Under the pieces are notes generated by a model that saw only the letters and a program-made list of their open reading frames with translations, was not told the origin of the DNA and ran no database searches. Below, one piece after another: positions 2,318-5,009 of a stretch of DNA of 64,000 nt. The position numbers were made by a program, and so were the translations under genes. Source of the stretch: Trichosphaerium sp. ATCC 40318. Its lineage: Eukaryota; Protista; Tubulinea. Location: positions 310,001 to 374,000 of the forward strand of contig JALMLS010000585.1 of NCBI GenBank assembly GCA_038496445.1, in the 5' to 3' direction. Each line of letters opens with the position of its first letter. Position 1 is the first letter of the stretch.

Positions 2318-4615
2318 ATGGGCAACTTCAAATCTAAAAAAAAGCCTCTAAATCAAAGACATCGTAAAGAGAATCAGAAACGTGTGCTACTCGTAGGTAT
2401 GACAGTGGTAGCTATTTATAGATAGCTACACAATTTTTTGTTGACGTTCGAAATAACATCAAACTTAGGACCTAGCATGAGTGGTACTTGTTCAGAATCG
2501 TTTTAGAGTTAATGTGATTTACCGAAAACGTGTTTAGGGAAATCAAAGCTTCTGTTGCAGTTTAGACTCTTAAAAGAGGAAAAATTAACCCCTAGGGACC
2601 ATCAGCATTACAATAACCTGGGTATATTATTTGTACAGAGGTTCTTACGAGTTTTATCTGCACAACCTGAATTTTCAACTGTGGACAGCGTAAGATACAT
2701 CTAAAGCACTAATTAGTAATATATGACATAAAATAGACGACACAAGATATGGTGAAGTCGTTTTTAGATATGAATGATTACACATGGACACAACAACACA
2801 TTGACGCTTTAAAACAGTATTAATATTTTTATTTTCTAAGTCAATCTCTTTGTGAACTAGGCTAGGTTGAAAGACAACGAAGAATTCATGAACATGATTT
2901 TGTATACTGACTTTAAATGTATCGTTTTATCCTGTAAGAAAAACATGAAAGCGTGAGTGGATTGTTAACATTATGATACCTTTGTTTTAACTTTTTTTTT
3001 TCTAAGCTACATTGATTCAATTTGCTCTCAAACTGCAGATTCTTTCGTTGTGACTTATGAACAAAGGCTTAACTACCATTCACATTCTGTCGGCATTTAT
3101 GAGCTAGAAGGTGAAGTTGATGGTACTGAATATAGATTGGGGGATGTTGGAGGTTTGTTTTTTAAAGTCTTTGTGTTTTCGACTTTTTTCTTTTCTGCAT
3201 ATCAAATCCTTCTAGGAAGTCGTATGGAGAGAAGACGGTGGATACATGTTTTATATGACATGGATTATTTAATCTATTGTATGTCTCTTGATAGGTGAGT
3301 GTCATATTGTGTTATGTAATTGACCCTCTCAAAAAGTTACTTGTACTACCTTTGGGAAGATGATACAATTAATGCGTTTGAAGAGTCATTGGAAATACTC
3401 AAAGGTCTAATACAAAGTTCAAATGTCAATGCTCCTATTGTCCTTGTATTGACAAAACTTGACTTGTTTGAGGAAGAGATACAAAACCATCCGGAAAAGT
3501 TTAGAGAGTTCTTCCCTGATTACAAAGGTACCAACCCGTTTACCCATGTAGCTTATACATATAATAGGAACAACAATGAATACATATGATTGTGCCATGC
3601 ACGTGTTCAATGTCATTTGTTCAAGACTAGATAACTCGGCATGTTTTCTTGGTGCTACTTTTACATCTATGATAGAAAATCCCAACGCGATATCATGTGT
3701 TTTAAGGCTAACCTCAGGGAAAGGAGACGTCAGTAGTGACACAGGAAAAGAATTTTCACCATGTAAGTATAATACTAAACCTTTCATAAATACACTAATC
3801 ATGCCATAGTATCATCCATCCAGCCTTTAATGTTTCCAAGAAAAACATCAACACTGTTCCTTGATGTTGCAAAATTAACCCAAGAAATATATGCCAACAT
3901 GAATGCAGATAATGCCTTTATTTGTTCCATACGCAAATACGGAGCTTGTAAACATAAATTCAAACTTCTAACATCCCTCAAAAAGCTGTACAAATCAGAG
4001 ACTCAAGACTTTGATATTAATACTGGCACAGATTGTATTAAATGTCACAAGGTTAGTCCCTCTTTTTTTTTGCTTCTACTTATGCAATTCAACTAGGCGA
4101 TATTGATGTGCCGAGCTACATTTTTTGAAGGAGCTATTCTTTCTAACAATCTTGGGACAAATGGTGACGACAATACAAGCATTAGCTTAGAAGAAGATGT
4201 GTTCATTATCAAAACTTTTATTCACTTTGCATACCTTGATGAAATACCTCCTAATCTTGATTTGGATACTCTATTGAAGCTCTTAAAATTCTCAGATAAG
4301 TATTGTATAGATTCCCTACAATCTGTTGTGATATTCTATGTTTTTAATCATAGTACACATGATAAGATTACTAACAGCGACGAAGATTATTATTATCTTT
4401 CAAAAATGAGCGAATTTCTTGAATATGGATTATTGGGATGCAACTCGTTAATCATTAGCAATATAACTTCCTGGTTTCTCTGTCAGGAATCTAAAAAGCT
4501 AAATATGTTTCTTAACAAACACAAGGATACTGTTGCAGTAAAGCATCTCTTAGATCGAACTGTTCTGGTGCTACAAAACACTGATGAACCTTCAGCAAAG
4601 AATATATCCAAATAG
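2318..4615 (+). CDS. Divergent heterotrimeric G-protein alpha subunit fused to a C-terminal BTB/POZ domain (multi-exon)
   Basis: MGNFKS myristoylation-type N-terminus; G1 VLLVGPSMSGKS, G3 DVGGSRMERRRWIH, G4 VLTKLD. GT-AG introns join the G-alpha exons in frame to ...EFSP-LSSIQPLMFP... and on to a BTB motif (DFDI...IKCHK-AILMCRATFF...FIHFAYLD...LLKFSDKYCIDSL). Confidence 0.8.
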
Positions 4616-4837
4616 GCATACAGACAATAACACTTCGCACAGTAATTAAAATACTCAGAATCAAGCAGTACACCAAGCTACGGCGTCTGTACTAAAAAGA
4701 GGCAATGGTTTTTTTTTTGAAGAAATTGTAGTTGTACTGTTGTCTACCAAGTTCCTAAATACACTTGTGAGGCTGAACGGGTGCTCTGCTTGGCTCTAGG
4801 AGTCGTTGTTTTCTGCTGTAAGCTTCTACCAATCAAA

Positions 4838-4909
4838 GCCTGTGTAGCTCAATGGCAGAGCAATGGCCTTCGAAGCCAGAGGTTGCGGGTTCGATCCCCG
4901 TCATAGGCT
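4838..4909 (+). tRNA. tRNA-Arg (anticodon TCG)
   Basis: Cloverleaf: acceptor GCCTGTG/CATAGGC, D arm GCTC/GAGC, anticodon arm TGGC-CTTCGAA-GCCA, T arm GCGGG-TTCGATC-CCCGT; T-run shortly downstream. Confidence 0.92.
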
Positions 4910-5009
4910 ATAATTGTTTTATTGCAAACCATAAAAGAAGCGCTCCACCTTCTAAACTAGCAAGCGTTGGGAGCTGTTGGTGATCGCAGCAAGTAGCAAG
5001 TCAACTTTT

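Follow-up and report, generated by a model that had tools for sequence, protein, structure and literature searches.

Results

An intact gene of eleven exons

We analysed a window of 64,000 nucleotides (nt) from Trichosphaerium sp. ATCC 40318 (contig JALMLS010000585.1 of assembly GCA_038496445.1, positions 310,001 to 374,000 of the forward strand); all coordinates given here are positions within this window. The subject of this report is a plus-strand coding region at 2318-4615, whose product probably joins a divergent alpha subunit of heterotrimeric G proteins (G-alpha) to a BTB domain and which is referred to below as the G-alpha–BTB gene. Assembly by hand and by script resolved the region into 11 exons (2318-2396, 2469-2483, 2538-2689, 2737-2816, 2866-2952, 3007-3152, 3216-3294, 3337-3527, 3568-3762, 3810-4051 and 4097-4615) and 10 introns. 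The joined frame runs from the ATG at 2318 to the stop codon at 4613-4615 and comprises 594 stop-free codons plus the stop. The introns all obey the GT..AG rule (10 of 10), are 40-72 nt long, and have a GC content of 0.30 as compared with 0.35 in the exons; the window as a whole has 37%. An original prediction, made on this DNA before the present analysis, had stated that canonical introns connect G-alpha to BTB in frame, and the gene model bears this out. Judged by its sequence, the locus is an intact gene that most likely yields, as its main product, one protein of 594 residues. A tblastn comparison of the model with the window did not detect a second copy of the gene within it.

The acceptors of the ten introns (2397-4096) are TAG in eight cases, AAG in two and CAG in none. 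A YTRAY-like motif lies 13-25 nt 5' of the acceptor in most of them.

The N-terminal part is a divergent G-alpha domain

Residues 1-325 are recognizable as a complete but divergent G-alpha domain. Domain searches were run exon by exon rather than on the spliced protein, and the detectable G-alpha similarity is confined to exons 6, 7 and 8, which match Pfam PF00503 collinearly at profile positions 145-280. Exon 6 (3007-3152), with switch I (LNYHSHSVGI) and strands beta2-beta3 up to DVGG, matches positions 145-191 (E = 0.19, 11.2 bits). Exon 7 (3216-3294) carries switch II, SRMERRRWIHVLYDMDYLIYCMSLD, and matches positions 194-216 (E = 1.6e-4, 21.4 bits). The best conserved part is exon 8 (3337-3527), which spans alpha3, beta5, G4 and alphaG and matches positions 222-280 (E = 2.1e-12, 47.3 bits). 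The curated whole-protein cut-off of PF00503, 48.8 bits, is passed only when the scores of the pieces are summed. When exons 6 and 7 were read through intron 6, the E-value against PF00503 was 4.6e-8; the same piece matched PDB chains of Go, Gi and Gt (E ~2e-3), with SRMERRRWIH aligned on QRSERKKWIH. For exon 8, the best PDB match was yeast Gpa1 (9sh6_E, E = 8.4e-7), in which LNKIDLFEE lies opposite LTKLDLFEE. Intron 6 itself (3153-3215, 63 nt) contains no in-frame stop, and its retention would leave the frame open and lengthen switch II by 21 residues, placed after Gly187 and before Ser188.

The five G boxes follow one another in the expected order at residues 27-34, 162-168, 184-188, 252-255 and 308-311, with spacings within 1-4 residues of those in Gi. 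Exons 3-5 (2538-2689, 2737-2816 and 2866-2952) encode the GKS that closes the P-loop, followed by a region sized like the G-alpha helical domain. From the P-loop Ser to His162 there are 127 residues, as against 131 in Gi (textbook numbering), which leaves room for a helical domain. Exons 3-5, searched separately with Pfam (exon 3 also with phmmer against the PDB), gave no detectable similarity. Exon 9, searched separately in both of these ways, likewise showed no detectable homology, and the readings of G5 and alpha5 given below are therefore positional.

Both residues of GTP hydrolysis appear to be replaced

The P-loop reads GPSMSGKS (residues 27-34), so the GxxxxGKS framework is intact. It had been named in the original prediction and is indeed present, but it depends on exon 2, a predicted 15-nt microexon at 2469-2483 that supplies PSMS. 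Skipping of this microexon would keep the frame, remove the P-loop and give an isoform of 589 residues. Where Gi has the P-loop Glu that pairs with the catalytic Arg of switch I, the Trichosphaerium domain has Met30.

The position of the switch-I Arg was assigned by spacing. His162 (3077-3079, in HSHSVGI) and Ser188 are 26 residues apart, exactly as Arg178 and Gln204 are in Gi (textbook numbering); this indicates that His162 replaces the catalytic Arg and that Ser165 is the counterpart of the Mg-binding Thr. Ser188 (3218-3220, in DVGGS, residues 184-188) could be placed by alignment: in the PDB match GGQRSERKKWIH it stands opposite the catalytic Gln of Go (GGQRSERKKW). The G4 motif is TKLD (residues 252-255, 3452-3463); it aligns with NKID of Gpa1 and keeps the Asp of guanine specificity. 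Dynamins, too, have TKLD as their G4 motif. The absence of the Arg, the change of Gln to Ser and the TKLD motif had all been noted beforehand, and in each case our assignment agrees.

The nucleotide-binding framework is thus kept (GxxxxGKS, a Ser at the Mg-binding Thr position, DVGG and TKLD), and switch II is well conserved. Data on mutants predict very slow GTP hydrolysis when Arg and Gln are both lost. The replacement of the two hydrolysis residues by His162 and Ser188 supports the view, also taken in the original prediction, that the G-alpha domain is GTPase-deficient. Mutation of this Gln to Leu has been described as constitutively activating (PMC8584482).

Both ends of the G-alpha domain are modified

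Exon 1 (2318-2396) encodes MGNFKSKKKPLNQRHRKENQKRVLLV, which combines a myristoylation motif (Gly2 and Ser6) with a polybasic stretch and includes the predicted beta1 strand. The N-terminus, MGNFKSKKKPLNQRHRKENQKR (MGNFKSKKK), matches the consensus of N-myristoyltransferase at Gly2 and Ser6 and continues into a basic cluster. This consensus is a known motif, and it is the basis for reading Gly2 as a lipidation site. The alphaN segment is basic and ~13 residues shorter than in Gi. These features fit a membrane anchor made of a myristoyl group and a polybasic stretch, in keeping with the earlier proposal of a membrane-anchored protein.

Exon 9 (3568-3762) presumably encodes beta6, G5 (FTSM, residues 308-311, 3660-3671), a shortened alpha5 and a Gly/Ser-rich stretch, SGKGDVSSDTGKEFSP (3714-3761). 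Only ~14 helix-like residues separate FTSM from SGKGDVSSDTGKEFSP. The exon ends at residue 341, near the end of a canonical G-alpha of ~354 residues; if intron 9 is spliced, 253 further residues follow beyond the Gly/Ser-rich stretch. On this positional reading, the C-terminal half of alpha5, which in G-alpha inserts into the receptor, would be replaced by the Gly/Ser-rich stretch, and a free alpha5 end would be lacking. The loss of the alpha5 end, together with the short and basic alphaN, argues against classical coupling to G-protein-coupled receptors and in this respect weighs against a role in receptor signalling of the usual kind.

The C-terminal part is very probably a BTB domain

We regard it as highly probable that the C-terminal part contains one, very divergent, BTB domain. 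Exon 10 (3810-4051) encodes a pre-BTB region of 66 residues, which includes the only possible internal start, Met349 (3830-3832), and, from 4007, the putative first BTB strands, DFDINTGTDCIKCHK. The first part of exon 11 (4097-4345) would supply the remaining BTB core, AILMCRATFFEG ... ISLEEDVFIIKTFIHFAYLDE ... LLKLLKFSDKYCIDSLQSVV. The last part (4346-4615) encodes a tail of ~90 residues, in which four helices are predicted with low confidence, and the stop codon. The BTB-like region corresponds to residues 408-505, and a single copy was found. It is split by intron 10 (4052-4096, 45 nt), which ends in an in-frame TAG.

Two kinds of evidence led to this assignment. The pattern D-x-D-I ... CHKAIL...(A/S)xxF ... 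I-x-L-x-(E/D)-V ... DKY can be followed across exons 10 and 11 (DFDINTGTDCIKCHK joined to AILMCRATFFEG, then ISLEEDVFIIKTFIHFAYLDE and LLKLLKFSDKYCIDSLQSVV). In addition, the protein-language-model features of exon 11 gave PF00651 BTB for all ten of the ten best named clusters (recognition value 3332); the top cluster was RhoBTB1-like (0.94) and the others were of the SPOP/BPM and BACK types. Since motif-based naming and the independent language-model features, whose clusters represent many Pfam families, picked the same one, the BTB call is very likely, and the domain named in the original prediction was thereby recovered. The helix pattern of a low-confidence model would fit the BTB helices A1, A3, A4 and A5, with four further helices after them, and the last 83 residues gave weak feature leads (<0.9) to BACK and BACK_BPM_SPOP.

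Conventional searches, made on the separate exons, speak against the assignment. PF00651 had no match at E <= 10 in exon 10, in exon 11 (172 residues) or in five sub-pieces. A phmmer search of exon 11 against the PDB returned no BTB domain, a word-index protein search with its BTB part returned nothing at E <= 10, and an exhaustive phmmer search with exon 11 alone against 1.84 billion representatives returned no BTB domain. The single-sequence AlphaFold model of exon 11 had a pLDDT (predicted local distance difference test) of 50 and was too poor for use.

The matches that did appear were rejected. PDB matches of exon 11 to the leucine-rich repeats of YopM and to SAM37 were judged to be due to chance. 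The sole phmmer match (P0001) was considered spurious; it is a CHU_C type-IX-secretion protein of bacterial origin that contains nine repeated stretches. Foldseek matches of the exon 11 model were meaningless helical proteins and were discarded.

The joint between the two domains

The two domains would be joined by splicing of intron 9 (3763-3809), whose length of 47 nt is typical of the gene and whose GC content is 0.28. Its GTAAGT donor is the best of the gene, and a branch-like site, CTAAT, lies 16 nt away from the TAG acceptor. That exon 9 stops where a canonical G-alpha would end also speaks for a fusion at this joint. The original prediction had put this intron at ~3765-3809, close to our model. 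A strict mini-intron pattern (GTRAGT, YTRAY and WAG, 38-75 nt in total), which was defined after the data had been seen, occurs 14 times over the two strands (128 kb in total; ~0.11 per kb per strand), no more often than in shuffled sequence. The chance of meeting it in the required stretch of ~45 nt and in the right phase is a few per thousand. The stop codon at 3807-3809 and the ATG at 3830 are only 20 nt apart, and this short distance counts against two separate genes.

Several features of the joint are unfavourable to a fused product. Nine GT..AG pairs can join the two frames without a stop, and in-frame joinability is therefore weak evidence. If intron 9 were retained, translation would end at the TAG at 3807-3809 and give a G-alpha-only product of 356 residues; use of a CAG acceptor at 3823, 14 nt downstream, would give one of 354 residues. 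Both products have the normal size of a G-alpha. The BTB frame, for its part, is free of stops from position 3779 onward, with an ATG of its own at 3830. Taking these points together with those above, we consider a fused G-alpha–BTB product likely. In principle, whether intron 9 is spliced as modelled, kept, or spliced to the CAG at 3823 could decide if the G-alpha is made free or coupled to BTB.

The 3' part of the gene is transcribed

RNA evidence came from one small RNA-like run (X1, 13 million letters, guessed to be RNA), which has 17% of the sampled words. Its contigs cover 3911-4633. None lies upstream of 3911, so none crosses intron 9, and this coverage lends no help to the fusion. Intron 10 is spliced out in two of the RNA-like contigs at its GT..AG borders (joint 4049/4095, cut +2), while one contig (3911-4071) extends 20 nt into the intron. 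The skipping of intron 10 at GT..AG by two contigs indicates that the 3' part is transcribed and spliced. The gene is thus at least partly transcribed, and splicing is proven for intron 10 only.

Over 4024-4515, two contigs differ from the window by 4-7%, and this second version is likewise spliced at intron 10. Nine of the 12 listed differences between these divergent contigs and the window are amino-acid changes. A divergence of 4-7% points to a second, diverged expressed copy, an allele or another strain.

Neighbouring genes and search for relatives

A multi-exon gene on the minus strand lies head-to-head with the G-alpha–BTB gene. Its ATG is at 2257, 60 nt from the ATG of the G-alpha–BTB gene, and its exons extend to ~930. 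The pieces of its open reading frame encode seven hydrophobic segments in series and a loop with YGREPWGGC. It had no Pfam match; language-model features gave leads below 0.9 to seven-transmembrane (7TM) receptor families (7tm_2, Dicty_CAR and Frizzled). The neighbour may be a receptor-like gene that shares a bidirectional promoter with the G-alpha–BTB gene, and the position of a putative 7TM gene beside a G-protein-related gene is suggestive.

On the other side, a tRNA-Arg(TCG) gene (4837-4910, plus strand; ARAGORN, and Rfam with 67 bits) begins ~220 nt past the stop codon, and a high-depth RNA-like contig that starts at 4700 crosses it. Rfam and the scans for bacterial promoters and terminators gave nothing useful beyond this tRNA. 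Further upstream, the plus strand at 69-758 has open reading frames made up of leucine-rich repeats of the LRR_6 type (GVH..I.L..T.VTD.GI..L).

Searches of viral contigs, and of metagenome contigs with exons 11 and 8, revealed no relatives, and the exhaustive protein search with exon 11 likewise yielded none. This absence fits an unsampled lineage and is silent on the occurrence of the architecture elsewhere.

Discussion

A possible cullin-3 adaptor with a hydrolysis-dead G-alpha

What might a protein of this composition do? The original prediction saw in it a CUL3 adaptor that couples receptors to ubiquitination, a role that can be proposed by analogy with RhoBTB. We would put at about even the chances that the protein is a RhoBTB-like cullin-3 adaptor, in which a membrane-held, hydrolysis-dead G-alpha recognizes partners for ubiquitination. 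In such an adaptor, the BTB domain would self-associate and recruit a cullin-3-type ligase, as RhoBTB does. The G-alpha module would be held at the membrane, where it might be fixed in a single nucleotide state or, like the extra-large G proteins (XLGs) of plants, work independently of nucleotide. There it could act as a partner-recognition or autoinhibitory module for G-beta-gamma, RGS proteins, effectors or 7TM receptors, and the bound partners, or the G-alpha–BTB protein itself, would be ubiquitinated. A more far-reaching version can be offered only tentatively and strikes us as doubtful: the protein would represent an undescribed class of cullin-3 substrate receptors that use the anchored, hydrolysis-dead G-alpha for recognition and deliver G-beta-gamma, RGS proteins, effectors or 7TM receptors to ubiquitination, and the way in which the junction intron is treated would decide whether a free pseudo-G-alpha or a ligase-coupled form is made.

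The strongest competitor accepts the fusion and takes the BTB domain as an oligomerization module only, similar to the T1, KCTD12-type or transcription-factor BTB domains. The protein would then bring several membrane-bound, frozen G-alpha-like units together as a scaffold on which G-beta-gamma, RGS proteins or effectors are sequestered, and ubiquitination would not be involved. Several observations favour this scheme: the BTB domain on exon 11 is too divergent for any profile method, and the leads of the tail to BACK are weak (<0.9). Moreover, inspection by eye of the loop that precedes strand B3 showed no clear hydrophobic-x-Glu motif, the Cul3 contact in the structures of SPOP and KLHL-Cul3, and Cul3 binding is not universal among BTB domains; these two points weigh against the adaptor role. 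Members of the KCTD family bind G-beta-gamma and affect cyclic AMP signalling (PMC9976452). On the other side, the nearest feature clusters of exon 11 (RhoBTB, SPOP/BPM and BACK-type) all belong to classes of Cul3 adaptors. On balance, we hold a purely oligomerizing BTB domain to be rather unlikely.

It appears improbable that the two domains are not fused at all. In that case, intron 9 would be kept or the CAG at 3823 used, a crippled G-alpha of 354-356 residues would be made alone, and the BTB part would be translated from Met349 on an internal transcript or would remain untranslated. The canonical G-alpha length of both alternative products agrees with this, as do the open BTB frame from 3779 with an ATG of its own and the start of RNA coverage at 3911, downstream of the ATG at 3830. 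The 20 nt between stop and ATG, however, leave no room for a 3' end and a promoter, and intron 9 has the best consensus of all introns of the gene. Furthermore, CAG is used by 0 of the 10 acceptors of the gene, and the tail that a retained intron would encode has an intron-like GC content of 0.28. A decaying or neutrally drifting gene copy, open and transcribed, with its catalytic losses due to erosion, would explain why detectable G-alpha similarity is left in exons 6-8 only and why an RNA-like version diverged by 4-7% has amino-acid changes at nine of 12 listed differences, but we consider this very improbable, because a 594-codon frame with 11 exons and ten intact pairs of splice sites is not expected under drift, the switch II and G4 regions are well conserved, and the 3' part is transcribed with intron 10 correctly spliced.

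A natural fusion of BTB to a frozen G-alpha would be the G-alpha counterpart of RhoBTB, and one chain would hold the link between G protein and cullin-3 that separate KCTD proteins make in animals. The fusion offers a ready test of whether a pseudo-GTPase can act as a substrate receptor. The expressed versions show fast amino-acid change, which bears on how a lineage expands such adaptors.

Comparison with known systems

Few signalling proteins have undergone as little domain shuffling as the heterotrimeric G-alpha subunits. Neither a term for nor a description of a G-alpha–BTB protein was found in the literature that we searched. A census of BTB architectures (PMC1257465) and a eukaryote-wide survey of the architectures of GPCR (G-protein-coupled receptor) pathways (PMC3971589) do not mention the combination. 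An already characterized architecture would have spoken against the original prediction; we found this one in no paper that we searched, and the G-alpha–BTB gene combines known modules into a domain architecture that is new.

With canonical G-alpha subunits (Gpa1, Gi, Go and Gt) the protein shares matches to PF00503 and to PDB chains from switch I to alphaG, G boxes in the same order and with similar spacing, and the Gly2 motif. It differs from them in the change of Arg to His, of Gln to Ser, of the P-loop Glu to Met, of NKxD to TKLD and of TCAT to TSM. Its basic alphaN is shorter by ~13 residues, and alpha5 appears to have its C-terminal half replaced, with ~250 extra residues following.

Plant XLGs bind G-beta-gamma and RGS proteins independently of nucleotide and are linked to the E3 ligases PUB2/4 and PUB25/26 (PMC8584482). 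Like the putative fusion protein, they consist of a G-alpha-derived domain without nucleotide cycling that is fused to an extra region. The XLG extension, in contrast, is N-terminal and Cys-rich and is not a C-terminal BTB domain. Moreover, the link to ligases in plants runs via separate proteins, and common descent of the fusion is unsupported.

KCTD5, in complex with Cul3, ubiquitinates G-beta-gamma (PMC10348674). In the KCTD5/2/17-Cul3 system, as proposed here, a BTB adaptor links cullin-3 to subunits of heterotrimeric G proteins (PMC10348674, PMC11047111). The KCTD proteins have a pentameric, T1-type BTB domain, and their own C-terminal domain receives G-beta-gamma, whereas the putative receptor module of the Trichosphaerium protein is a G-alpha domain on the same chain.

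The closest parallel is with the RhoBTB proteins (animal RhoBTB1-3 and Dictyostelium RacA), which assemble Cul3 ligases and are autoinhibited by a contact between GTPase and BTB (PMC4931677, PMC1257465). Both have an N-terminal atypical GTPase, a BTB domain (very probably so here) and a helical C-terminal tail (predicted here), and by its features exon 11 lies closest to a RhoBTB1-like cluster of BTB domains. The GTPase of RhoBTB is of the Rho family, while the G-alpha–BTB protein has one of the heterotrimeric G-alpha class, in which a helical domain would have room. RhoBTB has two tandem BTB domains, as compared with the one found here, and the N-terminal myristoylation motif, as a candidate lipid anchor, is a further difference. 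Finally, no sequence homology between the two was detectable by hidden Markov model methods. The G-alpha–BTB protein is thus not a member of the RhoBTB family, and at most works like one.

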